IMG/VR virus record: IMGVR_UViG_3300029945_000001
Span: 1 to 64,000 of that record
Length of the DNA: 64,000 bases
Strand: one strand, 5' to 3'
The stretch's first letter is position 1; every line of letters starts with the position of its first letter. The position numbers were made by a program, and so were the translations under genes. The notes below the pieces were generated by a model. That model saw only the letters and a list, made by a program, of their open reading frames with translations. It did not search any database and was not told the DNA's origin. Of the stretch, positions 1 to 10,185 are shown piece by piece.

Positions 1-3000
1 AGTTCCACGAATATCATTAATAACAGGATCTACTGATAAATAAGATTTAATAGCAACCTTACCAGAATCAGGAGTACATTCAGATAATACACCAACGCCG
101 TCTTCTGGATATGTTCTATCATCGACCATAAATGATTGAGCAGTTCTACCACCCTGCCCGGCATAAGTAACCGTTAACTTATCTTGAATTTCATGAATAG
201 GATTAATTTCATCAAATAACTGAACAGACTGATCATTAAGAATTTCATAAAAAACAGCATCTGGATTAATAGAGAATGATTTTTTATTAACTCGTTGATT
301 TCTATAAGTAGCATAACTACGAGCCATATGGTTATAAAGAACAGTTACCAATCTCTCATATCCACGAGTTCTTAGATTTCTCATAGAAGATGTCTGAATA
401 GCATAATCGTAAGATAACATTTCAGTTGCTTTAACCAATAAATTAAAGAAGTCTGTAGGCATATTCATCTTCTTTAAAGTATCTCTTGTAATAGTATCAA
501 TAAAGAAATCAAAGTTATCAGTAATACCTTTTAGATAGTTAACCTTTTCTCCATTATCTAACAACATAACGTAATAGGCATCTTTCTCATTTAAGTCTTT
601 TAATTCAAAGTTAGAAGTATTGTATTTTAAGAGTCCTGAAACAATTAAAGACTTTTCAATAGGATATCGATCAAACACTAAATATCCATCACTAAAGGGA
701 ACAATAATAGATGATAACTTATCTTTAGGAATATCTCTCTTTTCAGTATAAAAAGTATAGTCTATTTTAAGTTGTTTAAGAACTTGTGTAAGTCCATACT
801 GAAAGCCCATAATAAAAATAATAGGAAAGTTCTTATCTAGGATCTTTAATTCAGTCCACTCATGTACTACTTTAGGTAATGGCATTTTTCCTTTAAATTC
901 TGATACTAATATGTCAAGTATACAAGAGGAGTTTACTTCTGTATTTGTCTTCAAATCTATTTCATGAATAACATTATCAAAACCAAAGAATAATAAATTC
1001 TTATTTTTCATGCCGCAACAAACACCATACTTTTTCTCTAATGGAATGACTTTGTCTTTCTCTAGAATCTTTTTAACAAAATCAAATCTTTCTGTAAGAT
1101 CAAAGAATAACTGATAATTTGTTGTGATGAGTTGACTAAACTTATCAGCAACACATGTATATTCATACGGAAGTTTAGTAGGTGATTTCAATGCACCATA
1201 AACAATAGTTAGTCCTATTTTACTCTTATAAATATTGGCAATATAATTCTGAATAAATATTCTAAAACTATGAACCTTATGTTTATTTCTTTCAACAATA
1301 GTTTTGTTATAGTTAGAAGCTAGTGAAACTCTATTAGGAGCCACTTTACATATAGGAACATTAACTTCTTGTTTAATCATTCTCGACTTAATACCATTTG
1401 CTAACATAATACCATCATCACTTACTATTGGAAGTTTAAAGACAACTTTGTGTTTCTTACCTTCCATATCTTCATATGTAAACTTAAATCTCTTTACTCT
1501 ATTGATTCTAGAGATTTCTTCACTCTCTTCGATATCAGTTAAGAACAACCCAACACTATGAAAATGTAATGCAACATTAGCAATATCTTTATATAAATTT
1601 TCATTTATGTAATGTTCATCTAATTTAATAGCAGATGAAGATAACATAGATTCATCAAGTACATGATCCTTTAAGAAATTTAATTTATTTTTACTTATAG
1701 CAACATCTGGAGTTGCATCAATATGTTCAGATAATGATTTATTATTTAGTTTAACACCTTTATAAATCTGAGCAACTCTTTTTAATCTCTTTTGCTGAGC
1801 TTCAGAAAGATTAGGATAATTATTAATATAATCAACTGCTTGATTGTCGATGATAGAAGAAGGAATATTATCACTTAATTCTTGAACTTCAATATCTTTA
1901 CCTTGTACTTTAATAGCATTACGAATAATAACAAGATAGTGATTATACTTAATAGTTTTTTCTTTGTCTTTTGAAACAGGTATAAGCCAGGTATACCAGC
2001 GTTCTAGCGCATGTAAGTTTAAATATCTAATTCCAGTTTCTGATGTTAGGACATCATCTTCGCTATTCAGAATAATCTTCTTTATAGTCTTTTCACCAAA
2101 GAAAATTTCAAACCGATTTGCTTTAATAAAAGTATCTTTAGAAAGTGAATTATTTGATCTCTTCTCTTTTAATAAATGTTCTATAAACTTAATAAATTTT
2201 TCACTTTCATCACTGGAATGAATATCAAGATCGTTTGTAGTATCGATAAGGTTATGCATAACCATAGCACCACTAGAGCATATTACTAGCTTCTCTAAAC
2301 TATCTTTATTAAATATTTTCATCTTCTTAATAATATCTACTCTTGTCATAGGTTTATTTGTTAATAAATCTAATTCATCATCGTCTTCAATATCAATTAT
2401 TTGTTGTTCGTCTTGATTTTCTTCTTTTAATGTTTCTAATTCAGTCAAGTTATCAATATCTATCAATTTAATAAGTTTGTTAGTATTTGCTTTTAAACTA
2501 CTAACATTTTGATCTTTAGGAATATCATTTTTATCTTCATCTGTTATTTCTGTATGTTCTGTAATATCATTATCTTCAGTATCGTCATCTTCTCTACCTT
2601 GAGTTTCAACAATCTTATCGTAGCCATGTTCGTCTAAGTTATCAGTATCTATATTCATATGTCCGGCTAATTGTAGATTTGTAATATGTTTCATAACACT
2701 TAGCATCATTGATGTATCTTTAACTTTATCAAACATATGTCTCATATCACCAAGATTATAAATAATGGCTTTATCACCAGCTGTTAAAATAATATTTGTT
2801 CTGTCTAATTCTGGTACTGTCAATTCATTAAATAAAGAAGTAGCATTAACAAATTCATCTTTTTCTTTTACTCTAGAAACAAAGTTAAATAAGTGGATTA
2901 AGAAGTAATAGGTAAAGTCTTTACAATTCTTGAATTTAAGATTTTGATAATTAATTTCTTTCATAGTTGTTGTAAATGAAGATCTCTTATAAATGATAGA

Positions 3001-3594
3001 AGAAATCGGAATATGAATATAGTGAAGTTTGTGATCAATCTTAACAGTTGTATCTAAGATAGTTTTTAAAATAGCTTCAAATGTTCTATATCCTTGTAGT
3101 TTTCCACCAATAGGTTGTGCTGTTGTAATAGCATTATAATTAACAATAGGAAGAACATTACTTTTATTGAGCATAGATGCTAACATACTTGATCTTTTAA
3201 CATTATGATGTTTCTTAAAGAAGTTTTGAATCTCTGATGTAAAAGATTGAGGTCTATACTTTAAGTTATCATCAATAAAGAATCTAGACTCTTTTTCTGG
3301 TAAAGCTAACTGATTCCATAAATAAAGAGTAAATTTCTCATTTTTAATAAATGTATCATTTAGATCTGGAGATATGGTTAAGTGTTTATTCTGTAAAAAT
3401 TGGTCAACGACATGATAAACTGAATTATTAGGAAGTTGTAAGTTTTCAACTCTAACTAATAAGTTAGGAATATTAGATCTTTTCCATGTTGTATATTTAG
3501 TTTTAAACTGTTGAAAAACAAATTTTTCAAGAGCAGCTTCTTCATTGAAAGTTACAATACCACCATCCTCTGTTTGAAATGTATATGGCTCCAT
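1..3594 (-). CDS. rpoB: Virion RNA polymerase beta subunit, N-terminal part (phiKZ gp178-like); runs off the left edge
   Basis: Not in the ORF track. I translated both ends by hand and they share a frame. ATG at 3594 with AGGA RBS gives MEPYTFQTEDGG. The left edge reads DEINPIHEIQDKLTVTYAGQGGRTAQSF...VLSECTPDSGKVAIKSYL, matching the beta NP..GPGG..ETPEG region. Position near the beta'N and gp181-like genes fits phiKZ. Confidence 0.88.
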   Translation of the reverse strand, partial: MEPYTFQTEDGGIVTFNEEAALEKFVFQQFKTKYTTWKRSNIPNLLVRVENLQLPNNSVYHVVDQFLQNKHLTISPDLNDTFIKNEKFTLYLWNQLALPEKESRFFIDDNLKYRPQSFTSEIQNFFKKHHNVKRSSMLASMLNKSNVLPIVNYNAITTAQPIGGKLQGYRTFEAILKTILDTTVKIDHKLHYIHIPISSIIYKRSSFTTTMKEINYQNLKFKNCKDFTYYFLIHLFNFVSRVKEKDEFVNATSLFNELTVPELDRTNIILTAGDKAIIYNLGDMRHMFDKVKDTSMMLSVMKHITNLQLAGHMNIDTDNLDEHGYDKIVETQGREDDDTEDNDITEHTEITDEDKNDIPKDQNVSSLKANTNKLIKLIDIDNLTELETLKEENQDEQQIIDIEDDDELDLLTNKPMTRVDIIKKMKIFNKDSLEKLVICSSGAMVMHNLIDTTNDLDIHSSDESEKFIKFIEHLLKEKRSNNSLSKDTFIKANRFEIFFGEKTIKKIILNSEDDVLTSETGIRYLNLHALERWYTWLIPVSKDKEKTIKYNHYLVIIRNAIKVQGKDIEVQELSDNIPSSIIDNQAVDYINNYPNLSEAQQKRLKRVAQIYKGVKLNNKSLSEHIDATPDVAISKNKLNFLKDHVLDESMLSSSAIKLDEHYINENLYKDIANVALHFHSVGLFLTDIEESEEISRINRVKRFKFTYEDMEGKKHKVVFKLPIVSDDGIMLANGIKSRMIKQEVNVPICKVAPNRVSLASNYNKTIVERNKHKVHSFRIFIQNYIANIYKSKIGLTIVYGALKSPTKLPYEYTCVADKFSQLITTNYQLFFDLTERFDFVKKILEKDKVIPLEKKYGVCCGMKNKNLLFFGFDNVIHEIDLKTNTEVNSSCILDILVSEFKGKMPLPKVVHEWTELKILDKNFPIIFIMGFQYGLTQVLKQLKIDYTFYTEKRDIPKDKLSSIIVPFSDGYLVFDRYPIEKSLIVSGLLKYNTSNFELKDLNEKDAYYVMLLDNGEKVNYLKGITDNFDFFIDTITRDTLKKMNMPTDFFNLLVKATEMLSYDYAIQTSSMRNLRTRGYERLVTVLYNHMARSYATYRNQRVNKKSFSINPDAVFYEILNDQSVQLFDEINPIHEIQDKLTVTYAGQGGRTAQSFMVDDRTYPEDGVGVLSECTPDSGKVAIKSYLSVDPVINDIRGT

Positions 3595-3730
3595 TACAAC
3601 ATCCTATTTTGTAGTTCTAAATTATGGTAAATTTTATTAAATCAAAATTTCTTTAATATAAGTTAAAAATCTTTAAAGATTATATATTTTATGGTTTACT
3701 TTAGGCCTTTTCTACTGAAAGGATCTAGAT

Positions 3731-3871
3731 ATGGATACTTTTGATATTCTATTTATAATTAGTTTTATTATATGTTTTATAATCTTTTTATCTTTTGTCT
3801 TTAAACTACCAAAAGAAAAATCATTGTCAACAAAATATACTCAAATTAAAAATGTTAAATACTTTTTCTGA
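3731..3871 (+). CDS. Small membrane protein, 46 aa (MDTFDILFIISFIICFIIFLSFVFKLPKEK...)
   Basis: Hand-translated. AAAGGA RBS, one hydrophobic helix then a basic tail; stop lies just before a palindrome. Confidence 0.55.
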   Translation: MDTFDILFIISFIICFIIFLSFVFKLPKEKSLSTKYTQIKNVKYFF

Positions 3872-3875
3872 TCAT

Positions 3876-3907
3876 AACTACAGTAGGGCATATGCCCTAC
3901 TGTAGTT
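3876..3907. terminator. Perfect 32-bp palindrome AACTACAGTAGGGCAT|ATGCCCTACTGTAGTT
   Basis: Exact inverted repeat immediately after a stop codon. Confidence 0.75.
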
Positions 3908-3923
3908 TAAATCTATTGAAATA

Positions 3924-3931
3924 TATATTAC
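3924..3931 (+). promoter_or_regulatory. phiKZ-type early (vRNAP) promoter core TATATTAC
   Basis: Context AAATATATATTACTATATTG; the same context recurs at 4705, 30823, 47581 and 53241, each upstream of a gene. Confidence 0.7.
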
Positions 3932-3984
3932 TATATTGACTTAAGGATGCATTAAGTATCCATTCTCTTTTGCTGAGGTTTACC

Positions 3985-4350
3985 ATGACTTATTTTCCTC
4001 TTGTTGTTGCTAGATTCTTTACGATCACTCTTGACAAGGATGTTCTCGAACATACCAAGACTTACGAACATGAAAAAGAGACATACGAGTTCATCGTGAA
4101 GTGGACTGGCCTGACTCCGACCTGGAAAGTCGTCGCGCAGTTTAACTGCTTGATCAGAAATCTTGGAGGTTGGGCTCCCCTGACTTTCCTGTCGCTGATC
4201 GGCTTATCAGTCGAATATGGGTTTAACTCCAAGCTGTTCCTGGCGGCCCCCGTGGCGCTTAGTTTCGATCTGGTGGTGCTTCTTACCAGCATTATCCAGA
4301 AACTGAGCAATCCCATTTTTGGGCTTCTTTATAAGGAGGAACATATCTGA
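3985..4350 (+). CDS. Early hypothetical membrane protein (~121 aa)
   Basis: GAGGT RBS before ATG 3985; two C-terminal hydrophobic segments; GC-richer codons than core genes. Confidence 0.7.
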   Translation: MTYFPLVVARFFTITLDKDVLEHTKTYEHEKETYEFIVKWTGLTPTWKVVAQFNCLIRNLGGWAPLTFLSLIGLSVEYGFNSKLFLAAPVALSFDLVVLLTSIIQKLSNPIFGLLYKEEHI

Positions 4351-4357
4351 AAGGGAT

Positions 4358-4639
4358 ATGAACATGGACGAAAGCAATCTTGTTCCAAAACTGAGGTTCG
4401 AGTTCAATCTACTGATCCTGATGAGAGATAAAGATATACATGAAAATCAGGAACGGATGATCGGACTTCAGAACATTCTCATGAAATCTACTGCTTTTCC
4501 GAATAGCAGTGATGGCATCGTCTTCAAGGAGAACATCATTTCGGAAAACGAGCGCGAGTTCATTCTTGATATCATCGTCAAGAACACGCAGTTCAAGCTA
4601 TATAGAAAGATGGGACTAGTTTCTGTTGTGTTTATATAA
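4358..4639 (+). CDS. Early hypothetical protein (~93 aa)
   Basis: AAGGGA RBS before ATG 4358; followed by a hairpin. Confidence 0.6.
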   Translation: MNMDESNLVPKLRFEFNLLILMRDKDIHENQERMIGLQNILMKSTAFPNSSDGIVFKENIISENEREFILDIIVKNTQFKLYRKMGLVSVVFI

Positions 4640-4650
4640 GTGGAAACTAT

Positions 4651-4675
4651 GGGGGAGAGCATCATGCTCTCCCCC
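4651..4675 (+). terminator. Hairpin GGGGGAGAGCAT-C-ATGCTCTCCCCC with downstream T-rich tract
   Basis: 12-bp arms; T-rich sequence follows. Confidence 0.75.
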
Positions 4676-4704
4676 TTAATATCTTTTCTTTTTTATTTGA
4701 GATA

Positions 4705-4712
4705 TATATTAC
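4705..4712 (+). promoter_or_regulatory. Early promoter core TATATTAC
   Basis: AGATATATATTACTTATTTG upstream of the ORF at 4760. Confidence 0.65.
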
Positions 4713-4759
4713 TTATTTGAAAGTTTTAACCCTATCTAATGTATGATTAGGAGAGAGAA

Positions 4760-4861
4760 ATGAAGGCCGATAAAGCAAATCTCGAAGGTGTTGTTTATCT
4801 CGCCTTCGCTATGTTCGGAATGATAGTAATCATGGTGCTCGCATATACTCCGGCACAATGA
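4760..4861 (+). CDS. 33-aa single-helix membrane peptide (MKADKANLEGVVYLAFAMFGMIVIMVLAYTPAQ)
   Basis: Hand-translated. AGGAG RBS, own promoter, ends before a palindrome. Confidence 0.6.
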   Translation: MKADKANLEGVVYLAFAMFGMIVIMVLAYTPAQ

Positions 4862-4870
4862 TCATTAACT

Positions 4871-4900
4871 CTAGGGTGAGTTCATATGAACTCACCCTAG
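4871..4900. terminator. Perfect 30-bp palindrome CTAGGGTGAGTTCAT|ATGAACTCACCCTAG
   Basis: Exact inverted repeat. Confidence 0.7.
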
Positions 4901-4918
4901 TATGTGGAGAATAATCAC

Positions 4919-5044
4919 GTGGCAAAAATATTTCTTTGTAAGAAACATGGATGTGGGCACGAACTAACCAGTATTAAAGATAACGAAGTCTGTGACTGGT
5001 GTGGCTCGCCCATGGAGAAAATTGCTGCAATATTCGGCGTGTGA
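4919..5044 (+). CDS. 41-aa zinc-ribbon protein (MAKIFLCKKHGCGHELTSIKDNEVCDWCGSPMEKIAAIFGV)
   Basis: Hand-translated. GGAG RBS, GTG start, Cx4C...CxxC pattern. Confidence 0.65.
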   Translation: MAKIFLCKKHGCGHELTSIKDNEVCDWCGSPMEKIAAIFGV

Positions 5045-5047
5045 ATA

Positions 5048-5079
5048 AGAGAGGGAGTGGCATATGCCACTCCCTCTCT
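5048..5079. terminator. Perfect 32-bp palindrome AGAGAGGGAGTGGCAT|ATGCCACTCCCTCTCT, between convergent genes
   Basis: Exact inverted repeat; T-tract follows on the + strand. Confidence 0.75.
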
Positions 5080-5094
5080 CACCTTTTATTTTTT

Positions 5095-5370
5095 CTATAA
5101 ATCAAGATGTTCTGATAGAGTACAATATCCAATACTTTCATTAGTAACATTTCTTCTAATATTAACAAGTTCGCAACAATTATTATTTATAACAGTTTGT
5201 CCATCATACATAATAATTTCATCATTACAATATTTTTTAATATTTGTAATAATCACCATAGCATTAGGGACGTGATTTTTAAAAATAGGATCATTGATCT
5301 GACACATTGTAACGTCACCAATTTTCAAAGACTTTGAAAAAGTTTGTATTTGTGACATTTCAAATGACAT
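5095..5370 (-). CDS. Hypothetical protein, last gene of the radical SAM operon
   Basis: Starts 6 nt after the rSAM stop; 5 Cys; ends at a terminator. Confidence 0.6.
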   Translation of the reverse strand: MSFEMSQIQTFSKSLKIGDVTMCQINDPIFKNHVPNAMVIITNIKKYCNDEIIMYDGQTVINNNCCELVNIRRNVTNESIGYCTLSEHLDL

Positions 5371-5376
5371 CCTATT

Positions 5377-6672
5377 TTAGACTGGGAGTTTAAATTTATC
5401 TACAGAAAGGCCAAAAATGTTTTTTCTACTTTCTGGCAAAGTATCAGAACATATATAAAGAGGTACATAACCAGTTTGTGATTCAAATGCAACAGCAAAT
5501 AAAGGAATAAGATTTGTATAAGACATTTCGCAGGATGAAGCAAATAACTCATCTTGAATAAAGAAACAACTTCCTCTACATGTAGATAACACAGGACAAT
5601 CTTTACAATTCTCTCGTCTAGACCAATGTGTACCAGTATTTAATTTTACTTCATCGAGTTTTGTAATATCACCGATTTTATGAGATTCACCATTCTGAGC
5701 TATGGTATTAGCAGATGTATTTTGACATGTCAATATATCCCCATTCATATTAACAACGAGAACATTTTCTGCATCTAAACCACAACCTTGTGGATCATTA
5801 ACATGACTTTCAACATTAAAATGGGAAGTCATAACATTTTTTTGATTTGGTAATCTATCAAATAAACCAGGATTTTGTTTAAACTCTAACCAGTTATATA
5901 GACGTAAACTTTGCATTTCTTCATGAGTGAAATTAATCGAATCTTTACTATCATCAGAATAAGCAACAACATATCCCATTTCCGAGAAATTGATGATATC
6001 TCTCTTAGGAAATTTATTCATAAAGAATTCAATAATTTTTGATCTAGAGTAATTTTGTTTATTAAGAACAGATCCGAAACAGAATCTACCTTTGAATTTT
6101 TCCAAAATATAGTCGATAACTTCATAGTTAGTATCTAATGGATCATCACCACGGACGTGTTGTCCAGGGCCATCGTGAGACATAGACATGGTAAATCCAT
6201 TATCAAATAGAAAGTCAGCAATTTCTTTTGTAAGAAGACTACCATTAGTAATAATACCAAAATTAGTTTTTGGCATAAGCGGTCTTAGTTTTTCAATAAG
6301 AGGTTTTAATTTTTTCCAATAAACTAATGGTTCTCCGCCCCAAAACTGTAATTTCCTAATACCACTTAAATCTACATTATCTATTAATTTATTAACAAAT
6401 TCATCAACATCGTACTTATCTTTTGTTTCAGAGTGCGCTAAGAATTTCTGAGAACAATAACTACAATTGAAATTACAAGAAATGCCGAGCTGAATTTTCA
6501 TGAAATAAGGAGTTCTTGATTTCTTACACGGAGTTTCTTTAGATACACTAAACGGAACTATAACTTCTGTAGATTCAATTTCCTTAGCTGAAATTCTATT
6601 CGTAAGACTATCAAAATAAAAATACTTTTGTTCTTCAGTTTCCCAATCTTCACAAAGAATTTTATAAATCAT
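5377..6672 (-). CDS. Radical SAM enzyme with SPASM domain (peptide/protein maturase class)
   Basis: CNFNCSYC (CxxxCxxC), FWGGEPL, ITNGSLL, SHDG. SPASM cysteines CGLD..VNMNGDILTC and CKDCPVLSTCRGSC...C. GAGGAG RBS favours ATG 6672 over 6711. Confidence 0.92.
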   Translation of the reverse strand: MIYKILCEDWETEEQKYFYFDSLTNRISAKEIESTEVIVPFSVSKETPCKKSRTPYFMKIQLGISCNFNCSYCSQKFLAHSETKDKYDVDEFVNKLIDNVDLSGIRKLQFWGGEPLVYWKKLKPLIEKLRPLMPKTNFGIITNGSLLTKEIADFLFDNGFTMSMSHDGPGQHVRGDDPLDTNYEVIDYILEKFKGRFCFGSVLNKQNYSRSKIIEFFMNKFPKRDIINFSEMGYVVAYSDDSKDSINFTHEEMQSLRLYNWLEFKQNPGLFDRLPNQKNVMTSHFNVESHVNDPQGCGLDAENVLVVNMNGDILTCQNTSANTIAQNGESHKIGDITKLDEVKLNTGTHWSRRENCKDCPVLSTCRGSCFFIQDELFASSCEMSYTNLIPLFAVAFESQTGYVPLYICSDTLPESRKNIFGLSVDKFKLPV

Positions 6673-6688
6673 TGTACTTTTCTCCTCA

Positions 6689-7216
6689 TCAGTCACCGGA
6701 ACCGGCACCATTAGACAAGTCTACGATCGAACAATTACAGTTACAATTGTATTGACAATTACAATTACAATTACAATCGGCTTGTATACCAGTTGTATGA
6801 CTATAAGCACACTGGTTTGTACCCATTGGAGTACAAGCACAATTACATTGTACCATATCCTCATTATAAATCCAATTTAAACCATCATAACAAGCATCGT
6901 AAGTAATAACAATTCCGCATTGAGAACCATCAAGTTTATAATAATTAGGACTACTAAAATTACACACAGATTCTTGCACACACTGTCCAGTAGAAGCACA
7001 ATTTGTTGTAGTAGAAGTCGCTGTTCTTGTAATACTATTTTGAGAAGAAACAGGAGTAAAATAATTATATCCTCTTAAAGATTGTAACCCGTTTGCCATT
7101 CCATAAGGAGTATTTGCTTTAATAGTTGCCATACTCAATGTAGCATTAGAAGCGTTACCCATTAATACATCTATATCAGAAAAATTAATAGCACCAGATG
7201 TAGGAATATTTGTCAT
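6689..7216 (-). CDS. Cys-rich protein with (CN)n tail; putative radical SAM substrate
   Basis: 16 Cys, all in the C-terminal ~100 aa, ending DCNCNCNCQYNCNCNC; N-terminal IPTSGAINFSDI motif; directly upstream of the rSAM gene. Confidence 0.75.
   Translation of the reverse strand: MTNIPTSGAINFSDIDVLMGNASNATLSMATIKANTPYGMANGLQSLRGYNYFTPVSSQNSITRTATSTTTNCASTGQCVQESVCNFSSPNYYKLDGSQCGIVITYDACYDGLNWIYNEDMVQCNCACTPMGTNQCAYSHTTGIQADCNCNCNCQYNCNCNCSIVDLSNGAGSGD
6731..6775. repeat. ACAATT hexamer tandem repeat encoding Cys-Asn
   Basis: acaattacagttacaattgtattgacaattacaattacaattaca. Confidence 0.8.
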
Positions 7217-7509
7217 TGTTGATTACTCGTCAAATAAAGTAACAGATCATTTATGTCTGTACTGCCAGTTTCTATTCTTAATTTAATAAGATCTATGATT
7301 TCTCCTGTTGTATCAGATTTAATTTGTGTAGCAAGTTCTGTGGCATAAGTCGTTAACGTATCATTAAAAAATCCATAAATATCTTGTTCTGTTAATATAG
7401 TAGTTTCTATAGTACTTTTACCTGTTGTATCAGCAGCAACTAATTTAGTTTTATAGGCAGTAATAGCTGTTGTTATCTGATCATTTGTAAAACTGGACGC
7501 AATGGGCAT
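7213..7509 (-). CDS. 98-aa Thr-rich hypothetical protein, first gene of the rSAM operon
   Basis: AGGAG/AAGGA RBS; ATGA overlap with the Cys-rich gene. Confidence 0.7.
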   Translation of the reverse strand: MPIASSFTNDQITTAITAYKTKLVAADTTGKSTIETTILTEQDIYGFFNDTLTTYATELATQIKSDTTGEIIDLIKLRIETGSTDINDLLLYLTSNQQ

Positions 7510-7526
7510 TCCTTTTCTCTCCTATA

Positions 7527-9194
7527 TTAGAAAGGTCTTGAGACAGCTAATGCAAAATAATCAATACCATTTGTCTGTGCACCAATTAATAGTTGTTTCT
7601 GACTATTAATAACGGAAGCAATACTATTTAAATAATTTAAGTTTTCTATATTTGCTGTATCTGACATCATTATGTTTCCAGAAGTCATATCGCCATCATA
7701 ATCAGCATCAAGACCGGGTGCTCTTAATGCCGCAATAGTACAAGAATTATTAATAGGATTATCTAGGACAGGATATTGATTATATATCTTTCTTAAATTA
7801 CCAGAAATAGCTGATCTCAGTTTTATGATACGACCAGGTGTCGTTGAAACCAAATGTATTTTACTGGGATAACAGGATTCATTCTGAATAACAGGATATC
7901 TAGTATTAAACATTGTCTTTTCGATACCGTTATGAATAGCACTGAATGTTGACAAATAGAAAAGTTCTAACCAGGTTAAAGGTCTAATATATTCTTTTTT
8001 GATCTGTCTATTAAAAACATTTTTAAAGTCATTCATACCACGGAATAATGTAATTTCATCTCCTGTATCATATACCATAAACAGATAATATTCTTTATTA
8101 TTTTTATCTCTAATACTAACAGGACGTTTAGCAAAGTGAGGATTTTTAAATTTAGAAATAAGATCGCCAATAGCTTCATTTGTATTAAACTTAGCAAGTT
8201 CCTGATCAGTTACTTCCGTATATTCTAGATTTAATGTCGATTTATTTGTTAATAGAATTTTATTATTACCTCTTTGTCCAAATATAAAATCAAAGAATGC
8301 TACTCTAACCCAATGAACAACAGCCGGTTGTAAACCTTTAGCTGCTTGTAATACACCAATCTTCGTTTCATCTGGTTTTATAACTTGTAAATCATTTGGT
8401 GTCATACATTGATATGAAGCACCCGTAATAACATTACGAGTTCCCCATGTAATCTTACGTTGTGCCCAAACACCATTAATAAATCCTTTTTTACCATCAA
8501 CGATATTGTAAATATATTCATAAATTTCAACCATCTTCTTTTGTAAATTTAATCTTACTGTATCGAACACAGCAGATTGCGCATTTTCCAATGAAGATAA
8601 TGCTAATCCTAAGGATAAAGCGGATGAATAAATCTTATTAATATCATCTTGAGAAATACGCTGTTGATCTTCTTCGATATCTCGTAAACCGGCAGGAAGT
8701 ACTAATAAATATTTTGTAAATAAATTACCTTCTTTCTTATATTTTTCAATATCTTTAATGCGATCTTCTCTAGCTCTAGATTCAGTTAATTTAAATTCTA
8801 TTTTAGGAAGATACTTCATAAAGAAAGAGTAACCAGTACCGGCATCTATTGTTGTTTCAGGAGTTGGACACTTTTTAAAATCATTGATAGTATTATCAAA
8901 GATTGCATATTCTGTACCATTAATAATATTCTCATAAAGAGATCCTAATTTTATAATATTTTTATAAATGAGAGGTTGTAAAATATAAGTATGCATATCT
9001 ATATACCCAAAACTAACTAATCTTTTTGTATCACCGATCATTCCAAAAATCTGTTCTGAGAAAAAACCTTCTGAGTGAAATGATGTACTCGACGGTTCAT
9101 AAATGGCATGCGACGTTATTGGTAAACAACCATTTTCTTTAATATATTGCTCTGGATTAATAAGCCAAATATTTAATGCATTTTCGACTATCAT
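7527..9194 (-). CDS. rpoC: Virion RNA polymerase beta' subunit N/middle part (phiKZ gp180-like)
   Basis: GFFSEQIFG, FGYIDM, VLPAGLRD, GKKGFI, NTRYP and the catalytic LDADYDGDM. RBS favours ATG 9194 (track start 9227). Confidence 0.93.
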   Translation of the reverse strand: MIVENALNIWLINPEQYIKENGCLPITSHAIYEPSSTSFHSEGFFSEQIFGMIGDTKRLVSFGYIDMHTYILQPLIYKNIIKLGSLYENIINGTEYAIFDNTINDFKKCPTPETTIDAGTGYSFFMKYLPKIEFKLTESRAREDRIKDIEKYKKEGNLFTKYLLVLPAGLRDIEEDQQRISQDDINKIYSSALSLGLALSSLENAQSAVFDTVRLNLQKKMVEIYEYIYNIVDGKKGFINGVWAQRKITWGTRNVITGASYQCMTPNDLQVIKPDETKIGVLQAAKGLQPAVVHWVRVAFFDFIFGQRGNNKILLTNKSTLNLEYTEVTDQELAKFNTNEAIGDLISKFKNPHFAKRPVSIRDKNNKEYYLFMVYDTGDEITLFRGMNDFKNVFNRQIKKEYIRPLTWLELFYLSTFSAIHNGIEKTMFNTRYPVIQNESCYPSKIHLVSTTPGRIIKLRSAISGNLRKIYNQYPVLDNPINNSCTIAALRAPGLDADYDGDMTSGNIMMSDTANIENLNYLNSIASVINSQKQLLIGAQTNGIDYFALAVSRPF

Positions 9195-9262
9195 ATTTTT
9201 CCTTTCATTATATATATTAGGATTCATAATATCGTGTAATAAGTTAAATATTATTTATATTA

Positions 9263-9278
9263 AAAAATCATCTTATGA
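9263..9278 (+). promoter_or_regulatory. Candidate late promoter AAAAA-N3-TYTTATRR
   Basis: AAAAATCATCTTATGA; similar elements at 24363, 42577 and 51071, upstream of probable late or virion genes. Confidence 0.4.
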
Positions 9279-9309
9279 TTAATTCATACTGGGTAGAAGG
9301 ACCTATCCG

Positions 9310-10185
9310 ATGGACCAGACAGTTAGGTATTCCGATGAATTGCGAGATAAGATTTTTAATAAATCATTTACTGATGAAGATATTGAAAAAATAAAAGCTA
9401 TTAAACAAGATAAAGATGCATTAGATAAATTTTCAGAGAAGATGATTACTGGCGGATTGATTACTCCAGATAATATCTATATCGATTTACAATATTTTAA
9501 AGATTTAAAATTAGGATCATTGATGTCTCTTTTGTATAAAGAGTCAAAGATAAACGACGTTTCTGAAAAGTTTAATAAAATTAAATTAAACATGCAAAAA
9601 TATACTGAAAGAAAAACGGACGATCTTTCTAAGTATTTTGATATTGGATATACTAATGATGATATTGATAATCACCTAAACGATCCTCAGTATTCTGATG
9701 AAATATTTATGTTATCTCCAGCTACAGCATTTATTCATGTATTATCATGTCAGACTCAAGTTAATGTTAATCATTCTGCTGTTATAGGAAAAAGAGATGT
9801 TATTACATTTACTGTTAATACTTATCCACTTAACTTGGGCAATACACCAAAACGTCTTCTTGGAGATTTTATCAATAGTGTCTATTATTGTAATTGTAAT
9901 GTAATTTATAAATCCCCTTCTGATATAGCTAAGACAATAAAAGATTATGATGAATTATACTTATTCAATCTTGATAAACTAAGTCAGATTGATTTATTTC
10001 AAAAACAATTTTCAGAATTAACTTTCTTAGGAAAACGTATTTTTGCTCCTGCATTATTTAAAGATGAACATTCTTATAAAATTGAAGAAAGTCAAGTAAA
10101 TGGATGGTTGAATTTAGGATGTGATTTTACATATGTTAGATCTGAACAGTTTTCTCCTGGTGTAGAAAAGGACAATAAGAAATGA
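9310..10185 (+). CDS. Hypothetical protein
   Basis: 291-aa ORF with AAGGA RBS; ATGA overlap with the gp181-like gene. Confidence 0.75.
   Translation: MDQTVRYSDELRDKIFNKSFTDEDIEKIKAIKQDKDALDKFSEKMITGGLITPDNIYIDLQYFKDLKLGSLMSLLYKESKINDVSEKFNKIKLNMQKYTERKTDDLSKYFDIGYTNDDIDNHLNDPQYSDEIFMLSPATAFIHVLSCQTQVNVNHSAVIGKRDVITFTVNTYPLNLGNTPKRLLGDFINSVYYCNCNVIYKSPSDIAKTIKDYDELYLFNLDKLSQIDLFQKQFSELTFLGKRIFAPALFKDEHSYKIEESQVNGWLNLGCDFTYVRSEQFSPGVEKDNKK

Follow-up and report, generated by a model that had tools for sequence, protein, structure and literature searches.

We identified a radical SAM/SPASM enzyme in a giant phage, encoded beside a small protein with a C-terminal run of alternating cysteines, and found that this pairing recurs in 118 of 160 related loci from phages and bacterial genomes, with many of the cysteine-run proteins being tail fibres. 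These results suggest that the enzyme acts on the cysteine run and that the modified protein is probably a distal fibre or adhesin component of the virion, although the chemistry is inferred rather than shown, and we assign this reading a probability of roughly 0.5. The analysis was based on a window of 64,000 nucleotides (positions 1 to 64,000 of the IMG/VR record IMGVR_UViG_3300029945_000001). An earlier note, made from the sequence alone, had proposed a maturase operon with its own Cys-rich substrate; the observed gene layout was confirmed, and the proposal is supported.

Four tightly packed genes were located on the minus strand, encoding proteins of 98 aa (7213-7509), 175 aa (6689-7216), 431 aa (5377-6672), and 91 aa (5095-5370). 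The stop codon of the 98-aa gene and the start codon of the 175-aa gene overlap as ATGA. The third reading frame extends to 6711 (444 aa) from its first ATG, but the real start is almost certainly the ATG at 6672, which gives 431 aa, as in the earlier note; a GAGGAG lies 9 nt upstream, directly after the 175-aa stop, and the corresponding database cluster (P0001) is also 431 aa. The upstream neighbor on the minus strand (7527-9227) is a phiKZ-type RNAP subunit gene matching phrog_2986 (RNAP beta subunit, E 6e-127), and the gap of 17 nt contains a GGAGAG Shine-Dalgarno sequence. Based only on this spacing and the lack of a terminator-like site between them, this gene is probably co-transcribed with the cluster. 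A perfect palindrome (5048-5079) with a 14-bp stem, 9 GC pairs, and a 4-nt loop lies 15 nt past the 91-aa stop and is the only terminator-like site in 4400-9700. It is a probable bidirectional terminator closing the cluster, with a good T-run on the plus strand and a weak one on the minus strand.

The 175-aa protein, the presumed substrate, contains 22 Asn and 16 Cys, all of the latter in residues 73-162. It has a conserved N-terminal domain (residues 1-55), a Cys-rich middle, and an end reading ...QCNCAC...DCNCNCNCQYNCNCNC plus 13 residues, in which the alternating-Cys run occupies residues 148-162 (CNCNCNCQYNCNCNC). The DNA encoding this run and the preceding D (6726-6773, minus strand), the proposed modification site, is also seen as a 6-nt tandem repeat at 6731-6777, and it is the only (C.){3,}C run in the window in all six frames. 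The protein is a divergent member of a small-protein family of 622 or more members. Its closest relative, at 3855-4733 of one of the related loci (L084), is fused to a Hint domain and lies directly upstream of the closest enzyme homologue (P0002, 47% identity). The AF2 model of the 175-aa protein had a mean pLDDT of 54 and was confident only for residues 1-55, and a Foldseek search against BFVD returned nothing below E 0.001; no structural claim is made for the Cys-rich part.

The 431-aa protein is a radical SAM enzyme, with the CxxxCxxC motif at C66, C70, and C73 and a Pfam Radical_SAM (PF04055) score of 51.4 bits against a cut-off of 29.5, as well as a match to phrog_1802 (E 4e-53). It also has a complete seven-Cys SPASM motif (C297-x13-G-x4-C316, C356-x2-C359-x5-C365-x3-C369, and C381), although the Pfam SPASM HMM itself was not reported at E <= 0.1. 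Across 166 homologues, exactly 10 Cys were conserved, with the radical SAM motif present in 99% and all seven SPASM Cys in 100%. The AF2 model had a pLDDT of 89, and the top Foldseek hits were CteB (TM 0.56-0.60), anSME, and TigE, with CteB and anSME matching over the C-terminal domain. The enzyme reached no curated NCBIfam cut-off, whether for PapB (NF047865, E 1.5e-21, 76.9 against 340), CcpM (TIGR04068, 65.5 against 500), QhpD (TIGR03906, E 5e-17, 61.8 against 453), anSME (TIGR03942, 54.8 against 349), the SCIFF maturase (TIGR03974, 49.5 against 425), or CefB (NF038107, 46.3 against 600), and a geopeptide model was also among the best hits. These results indicate that the enzyme groups with peptide- and protein-modifying SPASM enzymes, not with cofactor or nucleotide enzymes, and that it represents a separate family comprising 262 clusters at 50% identity.

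The link between the enzyme and the cysteine run is strongly supported. A same-strand run of four or more alternating Cys, N-(C-x)n-C with x mostly N, D, or A, was found within 4 kb of the enzyme in 56 of 80 viral loci and 62 of 80 bacterial-genome loci. Among loci with at least 3 kb of flank on both sides, the counts were 25 of 31 and 44 of 48 (69 of 79 together), whereas the background over six frames was 2 runs in 459 kb and 0 in 199 kb, respectively (2 in about 660 kb). Many of these loci are related to each other, and the counts are therefore not independent events; on the other hand, several loci counted as negative carry shorter CxCxC family members. In the reverse direction, 3 of 3 sampled substrate-family proteins had the enzyme as a direct neighbor. 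Thus, two of the tests that the earlier note had named as capable of refuting its proposal, namely whether homologues are linked to Cys-rich ORFs and whether the enzyme groups with cofactor- or nucleotide-modifying families, came out in its favor.

Interestingly, the earlier note had also guessed at a virion appendage or receptor-binding tip, and this is supported for the family, although the 175-aa protein itself had no Pfam, PHROG, or BFVD fold hit, carries 13 residues after the run, and has no fibre gene beside it. Of 130 carriers, 102 ended within 10 residues of the run, while in 11 the run was followed by a self-cleaving Hint domain and in 14 by the SKIIC domain, which has no Pfam or PDB relative. 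Some small-family members are fused to Peptidase_S74, and in these fusions the SDxRLK cleavage motif follows the run directly. Nine of ten larger carriers hit PHROG tail-fibre families, one carrier has collagen repeats, and one has Mtd_N; Achromobacter phage JWF gp028 is one such carrier. Additionally, in two loci (L009 and L017) the pair follows genes resembling the long-tail-fibre distal subunit, so that the small Cys-rich gene occupies a gp38-like position, and a third locus (L167) has GP38 and an SU10 adaptor upstream.

The most likely chemistry is the formation of Cys-to-carbon thioether bridges of the NxxcB, PapB, or QhpD type. In this model, the enzyme is a three-cluster maturase in which each Cys thiolate is held on the open iron site of auxiliary cluster I, the 5'-deoxyadenosyl radical abstracts a hydrogen atom from a nearby residue, usually Asn, Asp, or Ala and probably at the beta carbon, and an S-C thioether forms. 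As NCNC contains overlapping NxxC units, repeated turnover would give a stack of small rings, resulting in a rigid C-terminal knob that resists redox change and proteases. In the family at large, this run is the mature C-terminus of tail-fibre or fibre-tip proteins, either encoded at the end of the protein or exposed by a self-cleaving Hint or Peptidase_S74 domain. The x positions were occupied by N (263), D (88), A (87), G (1), and S (0) out of 507, and Asn preceded the first Cys in 111 of 132 runs, which matches the acceptor tolerance published for NxxcB (Asn natively, with Ala, Gln, and Asp tolerated, and the Cys activated on an auxiliary cluster; PMC9389541). However, runs such as CACACACAC lack Asn and Asp, and the acceptor therefore cannot always be Asn or Asp. 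Moreover, SPASM similarity does not fix the chemistry, since the best sequence match in the PDB (8VPO/TigE) is a cyclopropyl synthase.

NxxcB, from a quorum-regulated streptococcal operon, was not among the 25 listed NCBIfam hits, and its substrate is a short leader-plus-core peptide with a single NxxC, whereas the substrates here are phage proteins of 126-550 aa with 4-9 alternating Cys at the C-terminus. QhpD appears to make several Cys-to-Asp/Glu thioethers inside a structural protein subunit rather than in a secreted peptide, but QhpC has no alternating-Cys run and belongs to a periplasmic enzyme. The enzyme shares with CteB and PapB a seven-Cys SPASM motif with only three Cys available for auxiliary cluster I, and its local pattern CG...PC[QH] matches CteB. 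Nevertheless, the model of residues 1-60 showed one short helix and three strands rather than a three-helix RRE, and the 91-aa and 98-aa neighbors had no PqqD hit; neither a short precursor nor a clear RRE, as expected for sactipeptide and ranthipeptide systems, was found. Likewise, anSME acts on Cys within a full-size protein and aligns over its full length, but the enzyme lacks the second auxiliary-cluster-I Cys and has an invariant Gln where anSME has an Asp directly after its cluster-I Cys (probably Asp277, the proposed catalytic base). We are aware of no fibre system that uses a radical SAM enzyme, and literature searches for such an enzyme tied to tail fibres or virions returned only papers that mention radical SAM genes in gene lists.

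Alternatively, the same enzyme and substrate might make a RiPP-like modified protein or peptide that acts inside or outside the infected cell, for example on competitors or on host physiology. This is less likely but not excluded, because the commonest small-family architecture, with the SKIIC domain, lies in T4-like auxiliary-gene regions far from fibre genes, next to PhoH, an Asp/Asn beta-hydroxylase, 2OG oxygenases (with no PDB sequence match for the 2OG oxygenase partner), a Trp halogenase, and a methyltransferase, resembling a biosynthetic cluster rather than a fibre module. In addition, the conserved N-terminal 55-residue domain of the small family could serve as a leader or recognition element, and the cluster in the window lies between RNAP genes. 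In contrast, no exporter, leader peptidase, or immunity gene was seen in the loci whose genes were annotated, the substrates are 126-550 aa proteins, many carriers are clear tail fibres, and Peptidase_S74 is generally a chaperone of trimeric fibres and spikes.

It is also possible, though somewhat less so, that the enzyme oxidizes the cysteines, as in the anSME-like conversion of Cys to formylglycine, or performs other radical chemistry such as epimerization of the x residues or C-C or C-O linkage. anSME is among the closest sequence and fold matches, the epimerase EpeE also appeared in the fold hits, SPASM chemistry is diverse, and the invariance of the Cys fits any Cys-directed reaction. However, the family lacks the fourth auxiliary-cluster-I Cys of anSME and its Asp, the 175-aa protein has no C/S-x-P-x-R sulfatase motif and no sulfatase gene lies nearby, and the x-residue spectrum with almost no Gly fits a beta-carbon acceptor.

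More doubtful is the idea that the run is mainly a metal-binding ladder along a trimer axis, as the cysteine counterpart of the HxH iron and zinc sites that appear to occur in T4 gp37 and gp12, with the enzyme having a different or only auxiliary target. The run does sit at the tip of presumably trimeric fibres, and alternating residues face one side of a beta strand, but metal sites need no radical enzyme and the tight, specific linkage of a SPASM maturase to the run would be left unexplained; the two ideas are not exclusive, because unmodified Cys could still bind metal. Chance adjacency to an enzyme for a nucleotide, cofactor, or host protein is effectively refuted by the co-occurrence counts, the reverse sampling, and the conservation of same-strand, overlapping or near-abutting genes across jumbo phages, T4-like phages, siphovirus-like prophages, and many bacterial orders.

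Radical SAM/SPASM maturases are known for small secreted peptides and a few enzyme subunits, but not for virus particles. A more tentative extension of our reading, somewhat less likely than not, is a widespread, undescribed pathway that installs a ladder of thioether or other radical cross-links in the tips of phage tail fibres and adhesins, which might even join chains of the trimer and in many phages comes with Asp/Asn hydroxylases, 2OG oxygenases, and self-cleaving Hint or S74 domains. This would be the first radical SAM post-translational modification of a virion receptor-binding structure. If the enzyme staples fibre tips, it would add a new kind of virion maturation chemistry and explain a large family of hypothetical genes in freshwater and marine phages, in Burkholderiales and Rhodobacterales prophages, and in cultured phages such as Achromobacter JWF and Ralstonia RSP15. 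It would also bear on how fibres stay folded outside the cell, on the engineering or heterologous expression of receptor-binding tips, which would need an Fe-S enzyme partner, and on genome mining for cross-linking catalysts that act on whole proteins.

The remaining genes of the cluster are not part of the conserved system. The Thr-rich 98-aa protein, which has no Cys, and the 91-aa protein, which has 5 Cys and starts 6 nt after the enzyme gene, had no significant Pfam, NCBIfam, or PHROG hit, as was also the case for the 175-aa protein, and phmmer searches with these three against the ORFs of loci L001-L083 hit only L004, which is the same phage. A megablast of 5000-9300 against phages gave no match, nor did tblastn of the 175-aa protein, the latter probably because of low-complexity masking. 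The three-rSAM clusters of the RP12, RP31, and S13 type in other jumbo phages are only 28% identical, have no (C-x)n run nearby, and are not evidence for this module. Recent horizontal acquisition of the four genes was rejected, because their GC content (0.26-0.34) is close to the window mean of 0.31. A structured RNA in the GC island at 3980-4420 was likewise rejected, with fold z-scores of +0.8 and -0.8 and no Rfam hit. Finally, positions 1-3900 are neither non-coding nor recoded but contain a long minus-strand RNAP gene that runs off the end of the window.

Four minus-strand ORFs were identified where the earlier note placed the cluster, at 7213-7509 (98 aa), 6689-7216 (175 aa), 5377-6711 (444 aa from the first ATG), and 5095-5370 (91 aa), and this observation was confirmed. 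The stop of the 98-aa gene and the start of the 175-aa gene overlap as ATGA, and a GGAGAG precedes the 98-aa start, which lies 17 nt after the stop of the gene at 7527-9227 (minus strand). Directly after the stop of the 175-aa gene, GAGGAG is followed by 9 nt and the ATG at 6672, and the enzyme is therefore almost certainly 431 aa, in agreement with the earlier note and with the database cluster P0001. A perfect palindrome with a 14-bp stem was found at 5048-5079, 15 nt beyond the last gene, as the only terminator-like site between 4400 and 9700.

The gene at 7527-9227 matches the phiKZ-type RNAP subunit family phrog_2986 (E 6e-127), and on the other side of the cluster an open frame at 1-3603 (minus strand), which runs off the left end of the window, matches another RNAP beta family, phrog_3148 (E 3e-156). 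The cluster therefore sits between two virion-type RNAP genes of a phiKZ-like jumbo phage, and the neighbouring large genes match phiKZ-type structural families. An identical copy exists in the IMG/VR contig 3300029955_000004 (L004). Between the RNAP gene and the cluster, a 1.5-kb stretch (3604-5094) contained no recognisable gene but harbored a GC island (peak 4000-4900) of 0.37-0.49 against about 0.27 around it. The plus-strand ORF 3970-4350 (126 aa, TTG start, hydrophobic C-terminal half) lies in this stretch, for which no PHROG hit, Rfam hit, phage DNA match, or excess RNA folding was found, and it may be a foreign small membrane-protein gene. Additionally, a plus-strand ORF of 46 aa (4904-5044) with two CxxC pairs, zinc-ribbon-like, is bracketed by two different perfect palindromes (4871-4900 and 5048-5079), both centred on CATATG, the second of which also closes the radical SAM cluster.

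The 431-aa enzyme contained Pfam Radical_SAM and Fer4_12 domains and matched the phage family phrog_1802 (E 4e-53). An alignment of 166 homologues conserved exactly ten cysteines, comprising the CxxxCxxC triad (C66, C70, and C73 in 431-aa numbering) and the seven SPASM cysteines (C297-x13-G-x4-C316, C356-x2-C359-x5-C365-x3-C369, and C381). The AF2 model was confident (pLDDT 89), and its best PDB fold matches were the sactipeptide synthase CteB, anSME, TigE, and ChlB, at TM 0.5-0.6. The NCBIfam hits were led by PapB, the geopeptide maturase, CcpM, QhpD, and anSME, although all lay far below their curated cut-offs (e.g., 77 bits against 340), indicating a separate family within the peptide- and protein-modifying SPASM enzymes. 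This family is sizeable: a full scan of 1.84 billion representatives gave 262 clusters at 50% identity with E <= 1e-30, and at least 300 IMG/VR contigs and 153 GTDB species genomes carry it. A profile alignment to anSME showed that the family lacks the second auxiliary-cluster-I cysteine of anSME and has an invariant Gln where anSME has an Asp directly after its cluster-I cysteine. The local pattern is that of CteB, and published work on CteB and NxxcB describes a three-Cys auxiliary cluster I as leaving an iron free to bind the thiolate of the substrate (PMC9389541). Other phiKZ-like phages, namely Ralstonia jumbo phages RP12 (ORF076-079) and RP31, and Burkholderia phage S13 (PMC11898562), carry a cluster of three radical SAM genes, one of which is 28% identical to the window enzyme, but no alternating-Cys ORF lies nearby.

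The 175-aa protein has 16 Cys, all between residues 73 and 162, and 22 Asn, and ends in DCNCNCNCQYNCNCNC plus 13 residues. To examine the linkage between the two genes, every locus was scanned in all six frames for runs of four or more alternating Cys, (C.){3,}C. A same-strand run within 4 kb of the enzyme was found in 56 of 80 viral loci and in 62 of 80 bacterial-genome loci, and in 25 of 31 and 44 of 48, respectively, of those with at least 3 kb on both sides, whereas runs further than 4 kb away numbered 2 in 459 kb and 0 in 199 kb. Most negative loci are cut off next to the enzyme, several others carry a shorter CxCxC version, and the window itself has exactly one such run. In the reverse direction, three substrate-family proteins chosen only for long contigs all had the enzyme as their direct neighbour. 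Although many loci are related to each other and these are not independent counts, the pairing holds across jumbo phages, T4-like contigs, siphovirus-like prophages of Burkholderiales, Rhodobacterales, and Rhodospirillales, and the cultured phage Achromobacter JWF.

The residue before the first Cys was Asn in 111 of 132 runs, and the residues between cysteines were N (263), D (88), and A (87), followed by a few C, Y, R, and Q, with Gly occurring once and Ser never out of 507 positions. Runs had a median of five Cys and a maximum of nine. Of 130 carriers, 102 end within ten residues of the run. In 11 carriers the run is followed at once by a Hint domain (CFPAG...), and in other family members by a Peptidase_S74 intramolecular-chaperone domain, whose SDxRLK cleavage motif abuts the run. 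These two unrelated self-cleaving domains in the same position, together with the many natural C-terminal cases, indicate that the mature protein ends with the Cys run. In 14 carriers, the run is followed by a conserved domain of about 170 residues, here called SKIIC (SKIICxKLYExGxM...ADQ.YG...WSEHMAY; aligned from L020:4136-4660 and 21 other loci), which follows the run in the commonest small-family architecture and has no Pfam or PDB relative. Interestingly, at two loci (L073:7585-8522 and L080:7602-8520) three tandem small genes (93-116 aa) each end in N-CNCNC(N/A)C* upstream of a single enzyme gene, and one maturase may therefore serve several substrates.

Among the carriers, one has collagen repeats and one has the Mtd_N domain of the Bordetella phage receptor-binding protein, and nine of ten larger carriers hit PHROG tail-fibre families. 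JWF gp028 is annotated as a fibre-like protein with a Hint domain and lies in the tail module. Ralstonia phage RSP15 carries the enzyme in a tail-fibre module, directly after its tail and side-tail-fibre genes, but no alternating-Cys run was found in the stretch examined.

The 175-aa protein of the window belongs to a family of small proteins of 126-176 aa, which shares an N-terminal MTLPASGAISFSDI... domain and a Cys/Asn-rich body (...NCGNIQCxNC...WLQxNCNCACTYNC...SYNCNCxC). A profile search found at least 622 members, all unannotated, with or without Hint, S74, or SKIIC extensions. The closest relative of the window protein (at locus L084, 292 aa, with Hint) sits just upstream of the closest enzyme relative (47% identity) and near an S74 protein. 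In two T4-like contigs, the small protein and enzyme follow genes that resemble the long-tail-fibre distal subunit, which is a gp38-like position, and in locus L167 the pair lies after GP38 and SU10-adaptor genes and before the holin and lysozyme genes.

Taken together, these results suggest that the enzyme acts on the alternating-Cys run, and modification of the adjacent Cys-run protein by this enzyme is likely. The interpretation of the earlier note, that the phage crosslinks or otherwise modifies the (Cys-Asn)n protein and that the product may be a virion appendage or receptor-binding tip, is supported as far as sequence evidence can go, the latter part for the family. The most likely chemistry is the formation of Cys-to-carbon thioethers, although we regard this as about as likely as not. 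The Cys are the invariant element of the run, the enzyme has the three-Cys auxiliary cluster I of thioether synthases, and its nearest curated relatives are Cys-directed. Moreover, the x residues (N, D, A, a few Q, and almost no G) match the acceptor range reported for NxxcB, which makes a Cys-Asn beta-thioether and also accepts Ala, Gln, and Asp (PMC9389541), and NCNC contains overlapping NxxC units. QhpD also appears to show that such enzymes can cross-link a structural protein. Nevertheless, SPASM enzymes perform many reactions, and the best sequence match in the PDB, TigE, makes cyclopropylglycine; runs such as CACACAC show that the acceptor need not be Asn, and the Cys-rich part of the substrate could not be modelled. 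That the window protein is a virion fibre-tip component is only slightly more likely than not, and the model as a whole is given a probability of about 0.5.

The system works like a ranthipeptide or sactipeptide system, or like QhpD, but the enzyme falls below the cut-off of every curated family, and the layout of leader peptide plus RRE is lacking. No description of a radical SAM enzyme tied to phage tail fibres or to an alternating-Cys motif was found in the literature searched, and phage papers that list such genes call them accessory or of unknown role. We regard the system as known enzymology applied to a new class of target, probably virion fibre tips, and as widespread.

There is also context contrary to a role in fibres. 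The SKIIC-type loci of T4-like phages lie among auxiliary genes (PhoH, gp59, and gp32) and carry a fixed set of further enzymes, including a PF05118 Asp/Asn beta-hydroxylase and a PF13759 2OG oxygenase, and sometimes a Trp halogenase, an arrangement that looks like a biosynthetic cluster. In T4-like contigs (L171:5520-10224, L169:6379-12340, and L017:7443-14310), the enzyme-substrate pair sits in a fixed gene set with a PF05118 Asp/Asn beta-hydroxylase and PF13759 2OG oxygenases, and in some loci a Trp halogenase and a methyltransferase. Further modification of the Asn/Asp-rich substrate is therefore likely.

In addition, a PF13759 2OG-Fe(II) oxygenase accompanies the enzyme in 112 of about 166 loci, an unannotated family of about 270 aa (like RSP15 ORF047) occurs in about 81 loci, and S74-like proteins occur in about 37 loci. 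None of these is present in the window, and the 98-aa and 91-aa genes of the window were found in no other phage among the loci searched. The conserved core is therefore enzyme plus Cys-run protein, and the window holds a minimal version of the system. One homologue, P0055 (660 aa), is a fusion of a 2OG-Fe(II) oxygenase domain (PF13640) with the radical SAM enzyme, which supports a functional tie between the two enzymes.
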